From sequence record PQ464595.1: 64,000 nt of DNA. One strand, written 5' to 3'. Shown here piece after piece: positions 4,555 through 43,294 of this stretch. The translations under genes were made by a program, and so were the position numbers. Position 1 is the stretch's first letter; each line of letters opens with the position of its first letter. Below the pieces are notes generated by a model, which had not been told where the DNA came from, searched no databases, and was given only the letters and a program-made list of their open reading frames with translations.

Positions 4555-4631
4555 TAGTACCCCGTCCGAGACTCGAACTCGGAACCTTCCGATTAAAAGT
4601 CGGATATTCTAACCAATTGAATTAACGAGGC
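4555..4631 (-). tRNA. tRNA-Lys(TTT)
   Basis: Cloverleaf, loop CTTTTAA; 3' end A-CTA. Confidence 0.95.
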
Positions 4632-10168: not shown

Positions 10169-10229
10169 TAGAATCTATTTTCTGTTTTTTCGATAAAAGT
10201 GAATAGAGTGTGGTTGCTGTTAGATTCTA
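10169..10229 (-). ncRNA. CAGCAA module E1 (free hairpin)
   Basis: TAGAATCTA-ACAGCAA-(variable)-AAACAGAAAA-TAGATTCTA. Confidence 0.75.
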
Positions 10230-11212: not shown

Positions 11213-11713
11213 TTAATTTTCTAAATTAAGTTCTTCATGAATTTCTCGATGACAGTTAGCACAGACTAACATACATTTATCTAATTCACTTTGAATCAGT
11301 TCCCATGAACGAGTAATACCTTCATCTGAAATACCAAAATCTTTTTGATTTGGGTCTTTATGATGGAAGTCTAACGCAGCTATTGATTTGTCATAACCAC
11401 ATCGTTCACATTTACCGCCAAGATATTCAACGGCTTTTATCTTTAATCGTTTACGATGTTCTGTAACTCCTTCAGAATTACATTTCATACATACACGCTT
11501 ACCGTCGGTTCTTTGTGAAAATTCAACATTGTGTTTTAAACATATTGAAGACTCACGTTGAATCATTATATGAGTTTTTAAACTCAAATCTTTGAAATAC
11601 TTCTTCATTGTAGTTGCTGATACATTACAAGTATTAGCAATCTGTTGAATAGTACTTCCACGTGAAATCATTTCCTGAACTACACGATTATCAATTTCAA
11701 GTTTTCTGCTCAT
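11213..11713 (-). CDS. HNH endonuclease (probable free-standing homing endonuclease) with N-terminal HTH
   Basis: CERCGY...LDFHH..P...C..VCANCHREIH motif. Confidence 0.9.
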   Translation of the reverse strand: MSRKLEIDNRVVQEMISRGSTIQQIANTCNVSATTMKKYFKDLSLKTHIMIQRESSICLKHNVEFSQRTDGKRVCMKCNSEGVTEHRKRLKIKAVEYLGGKCERCGYDKSIAALDFHHKDPNQKDFGISDEGITRSWELIQSELDKCMLVCANCHREIHEELNLEN

Positions 11714-11730
11714 AATTCACTTAAAAATAC

Positions 11731-11792
11731 TGGAATCCATTTTGATTTTTCAATTAACAGTTGATTTCATTTATGGTTGCTGCTGGATTCCA
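11731..11792 (-). ncRNA. CAGCAA module E3 (free hairpin)
   Basis: TGGAATCC-AGCAGCAACC...AAAAATCAAAAT-GGATTCCA. Confidence 0.75.
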
Positions 11793-11816: not shown

Positions 11817-11871
11817 TAGAATCTATTTTTGTTTTCTATATCCGAGAAGTTTTAATTGCTGGTAGATTCTA
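11817..11871 (-). ncRNA. CAGCAA module E4 (free hairpin)
   Basis: TAGAATCTA-CCAGCAA...AAAACAAAAA-TAGATTCTA. Confidence 0.75.
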
Positions 11872-11879
11872 AATGAGTA

Positions 11880-11987
11880 CAAATTGAGTTTACAGAAGTC
11901 CTTCCAAGGGACTAATACGTATTCTATTCTGACCTTAATAGGATAACATGCTATCCGTGTCACACCATAGTACGCCTGGTGAATTTG
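11880..11987 (-). ncRNA. candidate multi-way-junction RNA
   Basis: Closing CAAATT/AATTTG with hairpins CACCA/TGGTG, GGATA/TATCC, CTATT/AATAG, AGTCC/GGACT. Confidence 0.5.
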
Positions 11988-11995
11988 ATTAATAC

Positions 11996-12110
11996 TGGAA
12001 TTTATTTCGTTTTAGGCGGCTGCTCTCCCAACTGAGCTACAGTACTAGTACTGACAGGACTCGAACCTGCGACATGCTGCGTGATAGAAGTTAGTTGCTG
12101 TTAAATTCCA
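11996..12110 (-). ncRNA. CAGCAA module E5 carrying a circularly permuted tRNA domain
   Basis: Order: stem, ACAGCAA, anticodon 3' half, T arm (GCAGG TTCGAGT CCTGT), closed acceptor CAGTACT-AGTACTG, D arm (GCTC AGTTGGGA GAGC), stem. Confidence 0.8.
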
Positions 12111-12392: not shown

Positions 12393-12529
12393 AAGAATTC
12401 ATCGTTTATTGGATAGCCGTGTCTACCTATTTCACCATCACTATTCAGTACTGACATAGTTCGTAGGACTCGAACCTACACGCCATAAGGCCGCTATTTG
12501 GGTTAACATTTAGTTGCTGTTGAATTCTT
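12393..12529 (-). ncRNA. CAGCAA module E6 carrying a circularly permuted class-II (Leu-like) tRNA domain
   Basis: Variable arm, T arm GTAGG TTCGAGT CCTAC, acceptor closed by a TCAGTACTGA hairpin, D arm GTG AAATAGGTAGA CAC, GCTAT/ATAGC stem. Confidence 0.78.
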
Positions 12530-13578: not shown

Positions 13579-13636
13579 TGGAATCCACAAGGTCAAAGTA
13601 AAAGTTTGATTTTTGTGTGGTTGCTGGAGGATTCCA
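13579..13636 (-). ncRNA. CAGCAA module E7 (free hairpin)
   Basis: TGGAATCC-TCCAGCAACCACAC...GGATTCCA. Confidence 0.75.
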
Positions 13637-13975: not shown

Positions 13976-14152
13976 TTTTAATATATTCCAAGTATTTATC
14001 ATTTAATACTTTATGTCTATAGCCACCCTTCTTTCTCAAGGACTTGATATAAAAGGTAGCTTTAGGATCTAATCCTTTGCTAATAAGATAATCTTTTTCA
14101 AATTCATCTTGTAGTTTAGACATGTATGACTCACTTGAGTAAATTAAAAAGC

Positions 14153-14212
14153 TAGAATCTATAATCTTTGTTTTCACCAATTGAATAAGAGTATGTTTGC
14201 TGTTAGATTCTA
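14153..14212 (-). ncRNA. CAGCAA module E8 (free hairpin)
   Basis: TAGAATCTA-ACAGCAA-ACATAC...AAAACAAAGATTA-TAGATTCTA. Confidence 0.75.
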
Positions 14213-14336
14213 TGCGAGAAAGGTTGGACTCGAACCAACGACCAGGCCATTAAAAGTGGATGAAGTATGGTTGCTGAGAAATTACATTACAGTAATTTTT
14301 GGGTTCTACCTGCTCTACCAACTGAGCTACTTTCTC
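14213..14336 (-). tRNA. tRNA-Lys(TTT) interrupted by a 49-nt CAGCAA insert (14260-14308) in the anticodon stem
   Basis: Deleting the insert gives the perfect arm GGCCA-CTTTTAA-TGGCC; acceptor, D and T arms are intact. Confidence 0.75.
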
Positions 14337-14344
14337 ATAAATTT

Positions 14345-14448
14345 TGGGGCAAGGAATGGAGTTGAACCATTTCCAGGATCAGTGGCATCTCCAGTGTTTT
14401 ATCACTCAGAAGACAATGCCCATTGGGTAATTAAGTTCCTCAAGCCTC
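14345..14448 (-). ncRNA. tRNA-like RNA: T arm plus acceptor-like stem and a long hairpin in place of the anticodon arm
   Basis: AATGG TTCAACT CCATT; GGCA/TGCC, TCTTC/GGAGA, AGTG ATAAAA CACT. Confidence 0.5.
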
Positions 14449-14524
14449 TACTAAGTTATAGTTCCCTATAGATGAATATAACGTTCGCTTTCTGCGGCCT
14501 CTAATGTGCCTATCCTTAATTACT

Positions 14525-14647: not shown

Positions 14648-14802
14648 GGATTCTCATTAATTGAGCAACTATCTAGCACGGCTCAATATAACTAATTACT
14701 ATCTCCCTAGTTACCAGGTGGACACGAAGGGAGTTTTACGTCCGAGTATCCAATCTCATTTATGATTGATTTTTAAGATTTTATGTGTTGCTGTCAGAAT
14801 CC
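14648..14802 (-). ncRNA. CAGCAA module E10 with a ~135-nt structured payload
   Basis: GGATTCT-GACAGCAA...AGAATCC; inner CTCCCT/AGGGAG, GGAC/GTCC (pseudoknot), ATTGAGC/GCTCAAT. Confidence 0.65.
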
Positions 14803-14831: not shown

Positions 14832-14937
14832 AAGAATCGTTGTTTTCTGTCCCCACAACCAGTGGTAAATCGGAATTGAACCGAAGGTGTTTTTCGCCAA
14901 ATGAAATATAAAGAGTTATGTTTGCTGGACGATTCTT
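14832..14937 (-). ncRNA. CAGCAA module E11 with T arm and closed acceptor-like hairpin
   Basis: AAGAATCGT-CCAGCAA...TCGG TTCAATT CCGA...CCAC/GTGG...AAAACA-ACGATTCTT. Confidence 0.7.
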
Positions 14938-15012: not shown

Positions 15013-15195
15013 AATTTTTATTCAGATTCTTTCAATGACCATTCTGTACTTTTATCGGTACTTTTGGTTACTTCAAAACCTAATTCGGACATTACTTCAG
15101 GAAGGTTATTGTTATCAATACCACTAAGGATATGACGAACGATTACCATGTTTTCTTCAGATGATGCCATTTTACTATCCTTTGTTGAAGGAACT

Positions 15196-15311
15196 GAAAT
15201 CTTTGTTTTTCTGGCCCCAAGCACAGCCTACATAGCAACGTGGCTGCTGCGGATTCGAACCGCACCGTTTTTTTCGCATAAAAAATATTGTTTTGTTTGC
15301 TGTAAGATTTC
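15196..15311 (-). ncRNA. CAGCAA module E12 with T arm, closed acceptor and mini D arm
   Basis: GAAATCTT-ACAGCAA...TGCGG TTCGAAT CCGCA-GCAGCC/GGCTGT-GC TTGGG GC-AAAAACA-AAGATTTC. Confidence 0.72.
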
Positions 15312-15328
15312 GTGTTGCTAATACTTTT

Positions 15329-15357
15329 ATTATACCACAAATATTTGATTCGTTTCA
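15329..15357 (-). promoter_or_regulatory. TGAAACG-class promoter
   Basis: TGAAACG-N16-TATAAT, directly upstream of E12. Confidence 0.75.
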
Positions 15358-15378
15358 AATATTTCTTAATTAAATTCA

Positions 15379-15500
15379 GGAATCTCGTTTTATCCAGCAC
15401 CAAGCTCCCACTATTTGAATAAGGCAGATGTTCGTGGGTGGGGAATTGAACCCCGTCGTTTTGTTTTCATCAAAAGGTTTAATTTTTGCTGTAAGATTCC
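15379..15500 (-). ncRNA. CAGCAA module E13 with T arm, closed acceptor and mini D arm
   Basis: GGAATCT-TACAGCAA...GGGG TTCAATT CCCC-CCCAC/GTGGG-AGC TTGGT GCT-AAAACG-AGATTCC. Confidence 0.72.
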
Positions 15501-15517
15501 GCTGCCTTATGTACTAC

Positions 15518-15546
15518 ATTATACCAGATTTTTTTGAGTCGTTTCA
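15518..15546 (-). promoter_or_regulatory. TGAAACG-class promoter
   Basis: TGAAACG-N16-TATAAT, directly upstream of E13. Confidence 0.75.
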
Positions 15547-15572
15547 AATTTTTCTGTATAATTTTCAGAAAC

Positions 15573-16259
15573 TTAATCACTTACATAAGTTTCTAATTTG
15601 TTCCTGAACTGTACACCATCTTGGCTGTACTGTTGTGTTAATTTCGGGTTTTGCGTGTTGTTCACATCGTTGATCATGATTGGTACAAAGGACACACGAA
15701 TGAACGTGCGTACCTGACCAGTACTAACCACAGGACGACGATGAAGAATGTACGGGTCTAAACAGTACACGACATTCTCTTTACAACGTTTTACTTCAGA
15801 CGTGATGTTCTGTTCCAGGAAATGGTTCACGTTATGTTTCAGTGGGTCAAAATCATCAGGAAACTTCACAGAAACATTGGTGTATTCTGTCGGAATACGA
15901 TTAGTCCAAATGTAGTTCTGTTCAGGAACGTGAGCGACCTTAGTACTGAAACCGTCAACATGCCATTCGTCATCAGTTACAGATTTAACAACACCGTGTC
16001 GTACAGTAATGTAGCAGTACTGCTTGTCACCGTCAACAGCATTTTTCTGATGATTAAGCGACTCTATCAATACTGGAGATAACCAACGGAGTTCATCTGG
16101 TATTAACAGATTCTCACCGTCAGCACATACACACATACGCAGAATGTATTGTTCATCGAAAGGACATACTACATCAACTTTCGATAACTCAATTGGTTCA
16201 ACATTGTTTTCAAATTCACTTACAGAAACATTACGCTTTGCTCGTTCAATGATACCCAT
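15573..16259 (-). CDS. putative 2OG-Fe(II) oxygenase-like protein
   Basis: WHVDG (HxD) ... ILHRRP (H) ... RTFIRVSF (R) spacing typical of the double-stranded beta-helix fold. Confidence 0.55.
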   Translation of the reverse strand: MGIIERAKRNVSVSEFENNVEPIELSKVDVVCPFDEQYILRMCVCADGENLLIPDELRWLSPVLIESLNHQKNAVDGDKQYCYITVRHGVVKSVTDDEWHVDGFSTKVAHVPEQNYIWTNRIPTEYTNVSVKFPDDFDPLKHNVNHFLEQNITSEVKRCKENVVYCLDPYILHRRPVVSTGQVRTFIRVSFVPIMINDVNNTQNPKLTQQYSQDGVQFRNKLETYVSD

Positions 16260-22285: not shown

Positions 22286-22404
22286 TGCGGTGAGTACAGG
22301 AATCGAACCTGTGACTTCGGCGTGAAAGGCAATTGTTTGATTGCTGTTAGATTCAGTACTGGAATCCATTTTTTTACGCTATTTTACCACTAAACTAACT
22401 CACC
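22286..22404 (-). tRNA. tRNA-Glu(TTC) interrupted by a 46-nt CAGCAA insert (22331-22376) at 29/30
   Basis: Deleting the insert gives GCGGC-CTTTCAC-GCCGA; acceptor GGTGAGT/ACTCACC, G73. Confidence 0.75.
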
Positions 22405-23627: not shown

Positions 23628-23707
23628 TAGTGCGAGGGGATGGACTTGAACCACCGACACGGAGTTACCCTAAGATAATCTTGCTCTACCATCTGAGCTA
23701 CCCTCGC
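23628..23707 (-). tRNA. tRNA-like gene with aberrant anticodon arm (anticodon not assignable)
   Basis: Perfect acceptor GCGAGGG/CCCTCGC, D and T arms; anticodon/variable region about 5 nt too long with irregular pairing (AGATTATCTTAGGGTAACTCCG). Confidence 0.6.
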
Positions 23708-24244: not shown

Positions 24245-24359
24245 TGTGGAGAGGGGTGGATTCGAACCACCGTACCGTTCTTATGAATGAAATTTATGGA
24301 TGCCGTAAGATTCCATCTGGAATCGCTTTTCGTGTCCTGGGCCGCTAGACGACCTCTCC
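24245..24359 (-). tRNA. tRNA-CAT-like gene interrupted by a 39-nt CAGCAA-family insert (24292-24330; core CGGCAT)
   Basis: Deleting the insert gives CGTTC-ATTCATAA-GAACG (8-nt loop); the insert has a GATTCC AGAT GGAATC stem. Confidence 0.6.
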
Positions 24360-30607: not shown

Positions 30608-30718
30608 GGTGCTAAGAACAGGATTCGAACCTGTAAGGAAACCTCGCGGTACTTCCCACGTCCTATTGTCGCTTTCGCTATCGTCAGACGCTACGTTTAC
30701 CAATTCCGTCATCTCAGC
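30608..30718 (-). ncRNA. class-II tRNA scaffold with a 24-nt expanded anticodon loop
   Basis: GCTGAGA/TCTTAGC, Leu-like D arm, GCGTC/GACGT stem, loop contains GC-GAAA-GC, long variable hairpin, T arm. Confidence 0.7.
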
Positions 30719-30881: not shown

Positions 30882-30956
30882 TGTGGCTCATACCAGATTC
30901 GAACTGGTGTGGACAGAGATTTAGAGTCTCCCGCTACGCCTCTCAGCTAATGAGCC
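30882..30956 (-). tRNA. amber suppressor tRNA (anticodon CTA)
   Basis: Cloverleaf GGCTCAT/ATGAGCC, arm GGAGA-CTCTAAA-TCTCT, A73. Confidence 0.9.
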
Positions 30957-43172: not shown

Positions 43173-43294
43173 TAGTCGGGAATTGTGGACTCGAACCACA
43201 TCTCACGGCTCCCTATGCAATTGTATTGGTTGCTGTGAAATTCCATTACAAGAATTTATGTTATACGGTGTGCTAACCCTTACACTAATTCCCG
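43173..43294 (-). tRNA. tRNA-Pro(AGG)-like gene interrupted by a 47-nt CAGCAA insert (43219-43265) at 29/30
   Basis: Deleting the insert gives CCGGC-ATAGGGA-GCCGT; C1-G72, A73 and G37 fit Pro identity. Confidence 0.7.

Follow-up and report, generated by a model that had tools for sequence, protein, structure and literature searches.

An interrupted tRNA-Lys(UUU)-shaped gene of the jumbo Erwinia phage Kaldavass shares a helix-and-ACAGCAA module with RNA units found beside phage DUF2828 genes

A tRNA-Lys(UUU)-shaped gene of the jumbo Erwinia phage Kaldavass carries 49 nt inside its anticodon stem, which raises the question of whether this insert is an intron removed from a decoding tRNA or a part that is kept in the RNA. 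The gene occupies 122 nt on the minus strand of the 64,000-nt stretch of record PQ464595.1 that was analysed (the window; Table 1), and the GenBank annotation at the locus is a tRNA-Lys of the same length. The Rfam tRNA model (RF00005) scores 46.1 bits, above its gathering score of 29, with E=1.2e-6 over the whole window, and leaves a 64-nt unaligned block in the anticodon arm. The cloverleaf comprises a 7-bp acceptor stem (GAGAAAG/CUUUCUC), a D arm, a T arm (GUUGG-UUCGAGU-CCAAC), a 7-nt anticodon loop with U33 and the discriminator G73; a continuous 5-bp anticodon stem is absent at the gene level, where the 49 nt part pairs 28:42 and 29:41. The gene was missed by ARAGORN at default settings. 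After removal of the 49 nt by script, the program called a normal 73-nt tRNA-Lys(ttt), and with the insert kept it made no call; the claim of the original prediction that the removal restores the anticodon stem of tRNA-Lys(UUU) is thus borne out. The ARAGORN intron mode was used only as a locator, since it places the intron in the anticodon loop and mislabels the gene tRNA-Stop(tta). The insert lies at 28/29 and not at 37/38, as had been predicted, but the junction 29/30, proposed as a one-base shift, is impossible in standard numbering. Both the CAGCAA core and the UGUAAU-capped stem described earlier are present; if the U-G pair is counted, the helix strand is followed by GUAA, and in the other capped copies by GUAC, GUAG or GUGA. 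The 45-nt 3' exon gave no chromosomal tRNA-Lys match in E. coli genomes, and for this reason host-like exons are not claimed.

Table 1. Positions in the window of the interrupted tRNA-Lys gene, its parts and the other units discussed
Feature	Positions	Strand	Evidence or remark
tRNA-Lys(UUU)-shaped gene with embedded module	14215..14336	minus	Rfam tRNA 46.1 bits; annotated tRNA-Lys in PQ464595.1; covariation
5' segment, tRNA nt 1-28: acceptor 5' strand, D arm, A26, G27, G28	14309..14336	minus	
49-nt insert (UAG...CAU) between tRNA positions 28 and 29	14260..14308	minus	
Capped helix of the insert: AAAUUAC / GUAAUUU, loop UGUAAU	14279..14298	minus	3/7 pairs change on both sides among orthologues
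UCAGCAA core, 1 nt 3' of the helix	14271..14277	minus	CAGCAA invariant in orthologue alignment
3' segment, tRNA nt 29-73: CCA, CUUUUAA loop, UGGCC, variable loop, T arm, acceptor 3' strand, G73	14215..14259	minus	
Uninterrupted tRNA-Lys(UUU); unlike the exons of the interrupted gene outside anticodon loop and T loop	4557..4631	minus	
tRNA-like gene (Glu/Asp type), capped module in D loop (~22341-22367)	22288..22404	minus	Rfam tRNA 47.7 bits, 47-nt D-loop block
tRNA-like gene (CAU, 8-nt loop), capped module at 28/29 (24300-24324), variant core ACGGCAU	24247..24359	minus	annotated tRNA-OTHER
tRNA-like gene (anticodon AGG), capped module at 29/30 (~43230-43257)	43175..43294	minus	ARAGORN intron mode
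Open module unit, starts 2 nt past the interrupted tRNA-Lys gene: UAGAAUCUA + ACAGCAA ... UAGAUUCUA + G	14153..14212	minus	
Open module unit, own sigma70-like promoter, internal T arm	15379..15500	minus	
Open module unit, own promoter, internal T arm	15196..15311	minus	
Open module unit (CCAGCAA), internal T arm	14832..14937	minus	
Open module unit, swapped helix (GGAUUCU / AGAAUCC)	14648..14802	minus	
Open module unit, 58 nt	13579..13636	minus	
Open module unit, internal T arm	12393..12529	minus	
Open module unit, 55 nt	11817..11871	minus	
Open module unit (GCAGCAA), upstream of HNH endonuclease gene; ends by eye	11731..11792	minus	
Open module unit, 61 nt	10169..10229	minus	
Permuted tRNA-like unit: module 5' strand + ACAGCAA, T arm, capped acceptor hairpin, D arm, module 3' strand	11996..12110	minus	

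The gene with its insert is not a chance arrangement, given its GenBank annotation and the orthologues interrupted at the same site in XbC2, GAP32, CBB, BF and the pEa_SNUABM phages. Two jumbo-phage genera, Mimasvirus and Eneladusvirus, keep the gene, the insertion site and the split anticodon stem, which varies by compensatory changes (GG+CCA/UGGCC, CG+ACA/UGUCG, GG+GCA/UGCCC); the insert hairpin and all other stems also stay paired through double changes between the genera. When the split anticodon stem together with the insert hairpin was tested for covariation in the alignment of seven sequences, pairing in the proposed structure came to 97%, both sides had changed in 13 pairs, and none of 500 shuffles reached that result. 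The core is ACAGCAA in the orthologues, the exceptions being XbC2 (GCAGCAA) and Kaldavass (UCAGCAA), and among the seven sequences the exons of six form a flawless tRNA-Lys with the conserved CUUUUAA loop, the exception being CBB. Pairing of the single strands of the insert with the T arm or the D arm was not conserved in this alignment. To judge from the covariation, the structure is under selection. A decaying pseudogene hit by a dispersed repeat would be compatible with the annotation of the BF copy as tRNA-Pseudo, the missing annotation of the GAP32 copy, the loss of the Lys anticodon loop in CBB and the presence of a second tRNA-Lys in the phage. This explanation is, however, quite improbable, as every stem is kept by compensatory changes across two genera while the flanking DNA is only ~73% identical, and both the insertion site and the module are conserved.

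The insert is one copy of a module defined as a 7-9-bp helix with the 5' strand ending 0-2 nt before (A/C/U)CAGCA(A) and the 3' strand followed by G, which the interrupted tRNA-Lys gene fits with a 7-bp helix, a 1-nt spacer and the UCAGCAA core. The same short covarying helix followed by ACAGCAA is found at differing positions in three other tRNA-like genes of the window; the gene at 22288-22404 has relatives in XbC2 and FBKp34, and several of these other module-bearing genes have defective anticodon arms. Moreover, about 11 small intergenic units are closed by the module as an open terminal stem. One of them, at 11996-12110, is a circular permutation of the tRNA design in which the acceptor strands are not parted by a spacer, discriminator or CCA, and it matches the Rfam family YrlA (Y RNA-like) at 12019-12077 with 41.9 bits (E=7.4e-7). 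On the transcribed strand, the open units occupy gaps between tRNAs and ORFs, frequently immediately 5' of a ribosome-binding site, and a UUUAAU-like tract comes after their 3' strand. All of their helices are Watson-Crick without G-U pairs, whereas the capped copies include G-U pairs. The module is present at 15 of 58 motif-like sites on the gene strand versus 4 of 92 on the other. It is conceivable that the repeat functions as DNA, being a promoter, operator, terminator or recombination site whose location in a tRNA gene is incidental, and the purely Watson-Crick helices of the open units, their position 5' of ORFs and the UUUAAU-like tract would suit such a role. Nevertheless, we regard it as very improbable. 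What is conserved is pairing and not a palindromic site, with G-U pairs in the capped copies; the module is strand-specific, two units lie 3' of their own sigma70-like promoters, and conservation extends over phages whose hosts differ greatly in transcription machinery. The spacing of candidate -35/-10 elements is also inconsistent (15-23 nt), and the reading of the repeat as a sigma70-type or activator site was rejected on that ground. The annotated tRNA region of phage T5 likewise has small stable tRNA-like RNAs among tRNA genes and short ORFs, but the module family was not seen there, an adjacent helix being present at one of six motif-like sites.

Introns of known type do not account for the insert. 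Group I introns of bacterial and phage tRNA genes also interrupt the gene near the anticodon arm; they exceed 200 nt, possess a P3-P9 core and lie in the loop, whereas the Kaldavass insert has 49 nt, lies in the stem and showed no match to Intron_gpI or another ribozyme family at E<=1. A group I intron was therefore rejected, in agreement with the earlier remark that the insert is far too short for one. A permissive Rfam scan of 14100-14450 returned only tRNA and a weak YrlA match, with no intron or riboswitch family and no hammerhead, HDV-like, pistol, hatchet or twister ribozyme. The bulge-helix-bulge (BHB) tRNA intron, with its 3-nt bulge, 4-bp helix and 3-nt bulge, was rejected as well, being absent by eye in the seven orthologues. 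Pairing at the junctions is not conserved: it consists of GAA/UUC (3 bp) in Kaldavass and of 2 bp in BF, and is arranged otherwise in SNUABM_50 and in the gene at 43175-43294. To our knowledge, a tRNA splicing endonuclease (EndA/Sen) is not to be expected in enterobacterial hosts.

A protein-dependent intron is a different matter. An endonuclease would cut at 28/29 at either end of the module, and the exons would be joined by the phage RNA ligase into a working, host-like tRNA-Lys(UUU); perhaps the Ro60 homologue described below holds the module, which would then act like the archaeal BHB motif. The joined exons are called a canonical tRNA-Lys by ARAGORN, the anticodon loop and the split stem are conserved, and the flawless joined exons with CUUUUAA are equally expected of a spliced, decoding tRNA, which counts against the insert being kept. 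The inserts in the anticodon stem (28/29, 29/30) and the D loop, together with a permuted relative sharing the same module, resemble the disrupted tRNA genes of Archaea and Cyanidioschyzon merolae, in which one endonuclease and a ligase serve all forms; an RNA ligase gene also adjoins the Ro60-like gene of Kaldavass. Moreover, CAGCAA and the 3' junction are 17 nt apart alike in the interrupted tRNA-Lys gene of Kaldavass, in BF, in SNUABM_50 and in the gene at 43175-43294, a constant spacing that could mark a measured cut, again at the expense of a retained insert. However, unlike the archaeal and Cyanidioschyzon genes, those of Kaldavass have no BHB motif and a bacterial host, and the junctions are flanked by 2-3 unconserved base pairs. 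No endonuclease candidate was identified in the 64-kb window, a stretch of a genome that holds roughly 300 kb more. The module also occurs outside tRNA genes, in intergenic and non-tRNA units and in an mRNA leader, where excision has no meaning, and several module-bearing tRNA-like genes keep 8-10-nt anticodon loops or mismatched stems after its removal. The permuted unit lacks a spacer, discriminator and CCA at that place, and an uninterrupted tRNA-Lys(UUU) is already present in the phage. Splicing of this kind is therefore considered unlikely, and the earlier proposal of a precursor matured by a phage nuclease and ligase found no direct support, there being no BHB motif or ribozyme and no endonuclease candidate in the window, and the module occurring also where an intron is impossible.

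The distribution of the module in other phages points to a protein partner. It adjoins a DUF2828/DUF7788 gene in ten unrelated phage lineages. In FBKp34, four module units lie directly 3' of the DUF2828 gene, one being a full-length YrlA match (39.6 bits), and behind them comes a tRNA-Asp whose D loop contains the module. The module also adjoins the DUF2828 gene in Felixounavirus CL1, Vibrio ValKK3, Campylobacter CP81 and mycobacteriophage Whirlwind, where one unit matches YrlA (E=4.9e-5), and in Enterococcus, Bacillus, Ralstonia, Staphylococcus and Listeria phages. The helix sequences vary between phages, and 37 of 41 motif copies possess an exact helix, 7 bp or longer, that stops 0-2 nt short of the motif, versus 8% of all positions; on these counts the module helix is real. 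Around DUF2828 homologues in 80 IMG/VR loci, 32 modules lie on the gene strand versus 2 on the other. Only 23 of these 80 metagenomic loci had an exact-core module no further than 1.5 kb from DUF2828, which weakens the proposed partnership, and none of them had a tRNA-embedded module within 3 kb. The ValKK3 module lies in the 5' UTR of the DUF2828 mRNA, with the Shine-Dalgarno sequence and start codon falling inside it, and looks like an autoregulatory operator. As an IMG/VR search probe, the 15-mer GAATCTWACAGCAAC was abandoned, nearly all of the 120 returned stretches being coding DNA matched by chance; greater specificity was obtained with a hairpin-plus-core pattern, which recovered relatives together with a tRNA-Gln-like gene with the module on a 194-kb contig. 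Neither interrupted tRNAs of the present type nor DUF2828-associated RNAs were found described in the literature searched.

Kaldavass itself encodes a DUF2828+DUF7788 protein (record 278662-280176). Its AlphaFold model (pLDDT 89, pTM 0.87) was compared with the PDB by Foldseek, and the eight best matches were all Ro60/Rsr/TROVE structures (E=1e-9 to 2e-6, TM ~0.57), among the top ones the Ro60 of Thermus phage phiLo (9kop/9l5y). A sequence search of the PDB found nothing and TROVE was not recognised by sequence, the kinship being visible by fold comparison only. On the strength of its predicted fold the protein is a Ro60 homologue, and the genome thus encodes the Ro60 (TROVE + vWA) type of protein that accompanies Y RNAs and YrlA. 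The modules of Kaldavass lie ~200 kb away from this gene, and the ~15 module RNAs of the genome are far above the number in any known Ro60 system; both facts count against a Ro60 partnership. The link to DUF2828 also bears on another explanation, namely that the module is an RNA processing or stability signal, either recognised by an endonuclease of host or phage or protecting transcript ends as a stem, with the interrupted tRNA-Lys being cleaved into two paired halves as a split tRNA-like RNA. The placement of the open units, which lie on the transcribed strand between tRNAs and ORFs and frequently right before a ribosome-binding site, would fit, and the M. smegmatis YrlA is cut and stays a two-piece RNA (PMC4201824). 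However, helices of 7-9 bp are too short for RNase III, and the association with DUF2828 across hosts from Actinobacteria to Campylobacter indicates a phage-encoded partner and not a host nuclease. A processing signal is accordingly held to be rather improbable.

Comparison with known Ro60 systems shows both kinship and distance. Bacterial YrlA RNAs are tRNA mimics, one of which is cut by RNase P (PMC4201824), and the YrlA/Rsr pair (RF02553; Chen et al. 2014, PMC4201824) likewise joins a tRNA-like body via the position of the anticodon stem to a helix with a conserved single-stranded motif. The Kaldavass genome also has a protein of predicted Ro60 fold and an RNA ligase. The T and D arms of the YrlA tRNA-like domain are contained in the full tRNA body of the interrupted gene, whose D arm agrees with the consensus D arm at every conserved position of the Rfam alignment, and the YrlA core is matched at significant E-values by one unit each in the window, FBKp34 and Whirlwind. 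However, all matches stay under the Rfam gathering score of 69 (20 bits for the interrupted tRNA-Lys gene and 41.9 bits for the permuted unit), which counts against the likeness. In contrast to YrlA, the tRNA-Lys is unpermuted, with an open acceptor stem and a complete anticodon stem-loop, and in place of a terminal stem with GNCGAA/CGAA it has an internal, capped helix with (A/U)CAGCAA. The ACAGCAA-type motif differs from the GNCGAA/CGAA motif of known Ro60 partners, a further argument against the partnership, and its interpretation as a GNCGAA variant was rejected because the covariance-model (Rfam) alignment does not equate the two. Unlike Rsr, the Kaldavass protein falls in Pfam DUF2828/DUF7788. 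A parallel in phages is the Ro60 homologue of phiLo, which binds Y-RNA-like hairpins encoded next to its own gene, with several in one genome, as in Kaldavass; these RNAs, Yrl1 and Yrl2, are small stem-bulge-stem molecules in which a 4-nt motif is required for binding (PMC12135203). That motif is CGAA, unlike ACAGCAA, tRNA-embedded copies are not described for phiLo, and in Kaldavass the units are found in the tRNA region, a long way from the gene.

Taken together, the interrupted tRNA-Lys is more likely a tRNA-shaped partner of the Ro60-like protein than an intron-bearing tRNA, and the evidence favours the module as the signature of the RNAs that accompany phage DUF2828-type Ro60 homologues. 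For the specific proposal that the RNA is a tRNA/Y-RNA chimera, a tRNA-Lys body bearing a binding helix for the phage Ro60 homologue with the insert kept, we put the chances at about even. RNase P and 3' processing enzymes would free an RNA of ~122 nt folding as tRNA-Lys(UUU), in which the anticodon stem closes across the insert and the acceptor, D and T arms are all intact. An extra arm would jut out between pairs 28:42 and 29:41, made up of the 7-bp helix with ACAGCAA-type sequence, single-stranded, 3' of it and an A-rich strand 5' of it. This arm, the same module as the terminal stem of the Y-RNA-like units, may be the docking site for the DUF2828/DUF7788 protein, as suggested by the association in ten lineages, the strand preference of 32 versus 2 and the ValKK3 leader. 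The insert would stay in the RNA and hold a look-alike of tRNA-Lys on the Ro60 particle, rather in the way that bacterial YrlA links its tRNA-like domain to Rsr. Speculatively, the look-alike could serve as a decoy or substrate shown to enzymes acting on tRNA-Lys, including host anticodon nucleases; alternatively, it could draw tRNA-binding factors to an RNA repair or surveillance particle. The unspliced decoy or scaffold of the original prediction is thus the version favoured by the evidence, narrowed to a Ro60-type module.

A far-reaching extension, which we consider doubtful, would be that the helix with ACAGCAA defines a large undescribed class of phage Y RNAs, partners of DUF2828-type Ro60 proteins. 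In Rak2-like jumbo phages, some Stephanstirmvirinae and one metagenomic phage contig, it would have been grafted into complete tRNA bodies (Lys, Gln, Asp/Glu and others), and these Ro60-tethered look-alikes would, with the ligase, absorb, sense or repair attacks by host anticodon nucleases such as the tRNA-Lys-specific PrrC and PARIS effectors.

Ro60 and its Y RNAs form a conserved yet poorly understood RNA surveillance system, and we know of no binding partner of the tRNA-like half of bacterial YrlA. Genes of the present kind are currently labelled tRNA-Lys, tRNA-Ser, tRNA-Pseudo or membrane-protein ORF, and it is probable that many short hypothetical ORFs of phage tRNA regions lie over RNAs of this type. 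Homologues of the DUF2828 type are present in more than 700 sequenced phage genomes, and the results suggest a distinct Y-RNA class, recognisable by sequence alone, which marks the RNA partners of the DUF2828/DUF7788 family in hundreds of phages. They also suggest that a tRNA mimic can be a complete, anticodon-bearing tRNA-Lys, and they offer a testable link between phage Ro60 particles, the adjoining RNA ligase and the tRNA-targeting defences of the host.

Erwinia phage Kaldavass, with which the window shares 100% identity, is a Rak2-like jumbo phage (PQ464595.1, 366.6 kb) whose closest relatives, Xanthomonas phage XbC2 and Cronobacter phage GAP32, belong to Mimasvirus. The window, in which positions equal record positions minus 62000, covers the early, tRNA-rich part of the genome, where 26-30 tRNA genes and numerous short ORFs lie almost entirely on the minus strand. 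Read on the minus strand from 14336 to 14215, the interrupted tRNA-Lys(UUU) gene is a tRNA whose anticodon stem is broken after the second pair (see the table). The insert hairpin AAAUUAC-UGUAAU-GUAAUUU, followed by C-UCAGCAA, is present in the minus-strand reading as the original prediction described it. The gene scores 46.1 bits against the Rfam tRNA model (gathering score 29), with the insert as an unaligned block, and is missed by default ARAGORN; once a script has left out the 49 nt, ARAGORN recognises a regular tRNA-Lys(ttt) of 73 nt. GenBank annotates a 122-nt tRNA-Lys at this locus in both Kaldavass and XbC2, and a hypothetical ORF, CDS0183 (14193-14471, plus strand), lies antisense over it. 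An uninterrupted tRNA-Lys(UUU) is kept separately at 4557-4631 and, beyond the anticodon loop and T loop, shares little with the exons of the interrupted gene. A permissive Rfam scan of the locus gave only tRNA and a weak match to YrlA, the Y RNA-like family. Therefore, known small ribozymes are excluded, as are group I introns, which the original prediction had likewise dismissed. A bulge-helix-bulge at the junctions was also rejected, the flanking pairs numbering at most 2-3 and being unconserved.

Parts of the interrupted tRNA-Lys and other module-bearing tRNA-like genes in the window
Feature	Position	Strand	Description	Source
Interrupted tRNA-Lys, 5' part	nt 1-28 of the gene	minus	ends A26-G27-G28	
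Interrupted tRNA-Lys, insert	between 5' part and CCA	minus	49 nt, UAG...CAU	
Interrupted tRNA-Lys, 3' part		minus	CCA, loop CUUUUAA, UGGCC, variable loop, T arm, acceptor 3' strand	
Long tRNA with D-loop module	22288-22404		47-nt block holding GGAUUCCAGUACUGAAUC-UA-ACAGCAA	
tRNA-like gene	24247-24359		module at 28/29, core ACGGCAU, 8-nt loop	ARAGORN intron mode, GenBank table
tRNA-like gene	43175-43294		module at 29/30, anticodon AGG	ARAGORN intron mode, GenBank table

The interrupted gene also occurs in XbC2, GAP32, CBB, BF and six pEa_SNUABM phages. The GAP32 copy is unannotated and lies beneath GAP32_431A, a 'putative membrane protein' ORF (GAP32 comparison sequence, L003:317-436), the CBB copy is labelled tRNA-Ser and has an altered anticodon loop, and the BF copy carries a 'pseudo' annotation. 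In the alignment of seven orthologues, all members share one insertion site and an invariant CAGCAA, the pairing of the insert hairpin is kept while its sequence changes (AAAUUAC.. versus GAUUCAAG..), and the anticodon-stem halves co-vary across the insert. When this alignment was scored against a cloverleaf with the split anticodon stem and the insert hairpin, 97% of the cells were paired and 13 pairs showed changes in both partners; no shuffle out of 500 matched the pairing score, and sliding the partners by 1-3 columns lowered the paired cells to 33-49%. Therefore, the interrupted tRNA-Lys is a structured RNA under selection and not a decaying gene, and the lesser rival that it is a pseudogene is very unlikely, considering the pairing kept through double changes.

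Between 10 and 16 kb of the window, the core recurs with a flanking GAAUC as a repeat that is dispersed and strand-specific; that the module acts as an element at the DNA level is a lesser rival, which we regard as very improbable. In the longer-flank reading, an open unit has a 7-9-nt strand just 5' of ACAGCAA and its complement 30-130 nt downstream, followed by G. The helices vary between units and the pairing is constant, as in UAGAAUCUA/UAGAUUCUA, UGGAAUCCA/UGGAUUCCA, AAGAAUCG/CGAUUCUU, GGAUUCU/AGAAUCC and UGGAAUUUA/UAAAUUCCA. Some open units are ~60 nt long with an A-rich interior, other units hold a T arm, and two open units have their own sigma70-like promoter. On the minus strand of the window, 15 of 58 core-like sites have a helix of at least 7 bp next to them; on the plus strand the figure is 4 of 92. 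Since a small G-U-A-N-type loop connects the two module strands in the tRNA inserts, the insert is the open-unit helix with its flanking single strands, capped rather than open. A capped module also stands at 28/29 of a tRNA-Gln(UUG)-like gene on the 194-kb IMG/VR contig 3300021387_001157 (L173:1711-1828), in a tRNA cluster that also yields a permuted-tmRNA match. Short ORFs overlying module units (e.g. 11823-11963, 15143-15403 and 15479-15580) are probably not genes. An HNH endonuclease gene lies immediately 3' of a module unit in Kaldavass (11213-11713, minus strand) and immediately 3' of the interrupted tRNA-Lys in pEa_SNUABM_50 (L007:476-701), which hints at homing-endonuclease traffic in such tRNA regions.

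The tRNAs of the region have further peculiarities, all on the minus strand. The GenBank tRNA-Lys at 23631-23707 is given a 4-base anticodon (ttag) by ARAGORN, and its anticodon arm does not form a normal 5-bp stem and 7-nt loop. A suppressor-type tRNA at 30884-30956, with anticodon CUA reading UAG, is labelled Pyl by ARAGORN and 'suppressor tRNA' in GenBank. The 109-nt tRNA-Arg(ACG) call at 30610-30718, overlapped by two small annotated ORFs, has a different extra segment of ~17 nt without the ACAGCAA module. Directly after tRNA-Tyr, 2425-2505 matches the Rfam tRNA model (43.1 bits), is absent from ARAGORN and GenBank, and has a seemingly atypical T arm. Counted on both strands of window 1-64000, AGTACT has 208 copies where base composition predicts 20.8, CAGTACTG has 43, and the 6-bp palindromes CCATGG, CAGCTG, AGGCCT, AGCGCT, ACGCGT and CCCGGG do not occur. 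Such counts point to strong selection or avoidance of sites, with a possible link to restriction-modification or a phage DNA-binding factor.

In the unit at 11996-12110, the module strands enclose a T arm, a capped acceptor-like hairpin and a D arm, which makes the unit a circularly permuted tRNA; its core matches YrlA with 41.9 bits (E=7.4e-7). YrlA is the tRNA-mimicking partner of bacterial Ro60 (Rsr), with the Ro60 site on its terminal stem (PMC4201824). The interrupted tRNA-Lys and the unit at 11996-12110 share one design in circularly permuted form, with the module helix attached to a tRNA body at the anticodon-stem position. Klebsiella phage FBKp34 (Stephanstirmvirinae, 141 kb) carries a relative of the D-loop chimera at 22288-22404, which is annotated there as a 114-nt tRNA-Asp. 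In this phage, the 480 nt separating the DUF2828/DUF7788 gene from the tRNA array hold four helix and UACAGCAA units, the third of which gives a full-length match to YrlA (39.6 bits).

The DUF2828 protein was found by tblastn in ~710 phage records, where a frequent annotation is 'Ro-like RNA-binding protein', and its gene is present in every phage bearing the interrupted tRNA-Lys. In Kaldavass, CBB and GAP32 it adjoins an RNA ligase gene (PF09414 and PHA02142 OB domain). A sequence search of the PDB gave no match; for an AlphaFold model built from 48 homologues (pLDDT 89.3, pTM 0.87), the best eight Foldseek matches were all to Ro60, Rsr or TROVE structures (E=1.2e-9 to 1.7e-6, TM about 0.57 across the whole length). 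Among these eight is the Ro60 of Thermus phage phiLo, which binds, via a CGAA motif, two Y-RNA-like hairpins encoded next to its own gene (PMC12135203). ROT/TROVE proteins of some jumbo phages were described by Iyer and colleagues as an RNA-repair platform with a tRNA-like partner (PMC7824862).

To gauge the generality of this association, DUF2828 neighbourhoods were taken from ten further lineages. ACAGCAA with an adjacent helix stands next to the gene in Felixounavirus CL1 (4 copies), Campylobacter CP81 (2), mycobacteriophage Whirlwind (3), Enterococcus VRE9_2 (1), Bacillus PBC2 (3), Ralstonia RSP15 (2), Staphylococcus S-CoN_Ph9 (3) and Listeria cka11 (3), and no module was found near that of Aeromonas phiAS5. 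The helices of Whirlwind, such as GGACAC/GUGUCC, are GC-rich, and its middle unit matches YrlA (E=4.9e-5). Vibrio phage ValKK3 has its only copy in the DUF2828 mRNA leader (L197:2440-2510), with the Shine-Dalgarno in the loop and the AUG start codon in the 3' strand, which looks like the layout of an autoregulatory translational operator. Across all phage loci, 37 of 41 core copies have an exact helix of 7 bp or more that ends 0-2 nt upstream, compared with 8.1% of all positions. Within 1.5 kb of DUF2828 homologues in 80 IMG/VR loci, cores numbered 65 on the gene strand and 21 on the opposite strand (~15 expected), full modules 32 and 2, and loci with a module 23 and 2, respectively. In the control, the tRNA region of phage T5, a helix adjoined one of six core-like sites, an ACAGCAA with a 9-bp helix, and apart from that site the module family was absent. 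The T5 record (L206; 30284-33949, 40848-41566) annotates eight stable RNAs in this region; the function of five is given as unknown, and the other three are called tRNA-like or putatively so. In Listeria cka11 (L205:86-522), ROOL RNA is matched below the gathering score (82.5 bits, E=3.5e-15) some 1 kb upstream of the DUF2828 gene, ahead of a tRNA and the module units.

The insert of the interrupted tRNA-Lys is a copy of the module marking the small RNAs that accompany DUF2828-type phage Ro60 homologues. Most economically, and with moderate confidence, we take the gene to encode an RNA of the Y type in which a complete tRNA-Lys(UUU) serves as the tRNA-like part, the module being retained as an extra anticodon-stem arm. 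Retention is favoured because the module also stands where an intron role is impossible, forms the RNA ends in the permuted relative and varies in position (D loop, 28/29, 29/30), and because several sister chimeras have imperfect anticodon arms. Splicing of the insert, with the exons joined into a working tRNA-Lys, is unlikely, as neither a junction motif nor an endonuclease was identified and a binding site accords better with the other contexts of the module, although the joined exons form a perfect tRNA, the loop CUUUUAA is kept in six of seven aligned sequences (CBB is the exception), CAGCAA lies 17 nt from the 3' junction in four anticodon-stem chimeras, an RNA ligase is at hand, and the spread of disrupted and permuted forms recalls archaeal and red-algal tRNA genes. 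A lesser rival, in which the module is a processing or stability signal giving a split tRNA, is improbable.

Summarizing, Ro60/Y RNA systems, including those of phages, and YrlA-type tRNA mimicry are already known; in Rfam 15 and the searchable literature, no description was found of the helix and ACAGCAA module as the signature of RNAs associated with DUF2828, of an expansion to ~15 copies in one jumbo phage, or of the module as a capped arm within otherwise complete tRNA genes. Both PrrC and the PARIS effector have tRNA-Lys as their substrate. Because of this, and because a separate tRNA-Lys is kept and DUF2828 is paired with an RNA ligase, it is attractive to suppose that a particle containing the retained-module tRNA-Lys may act as a decoy, sensor or repair substrate.
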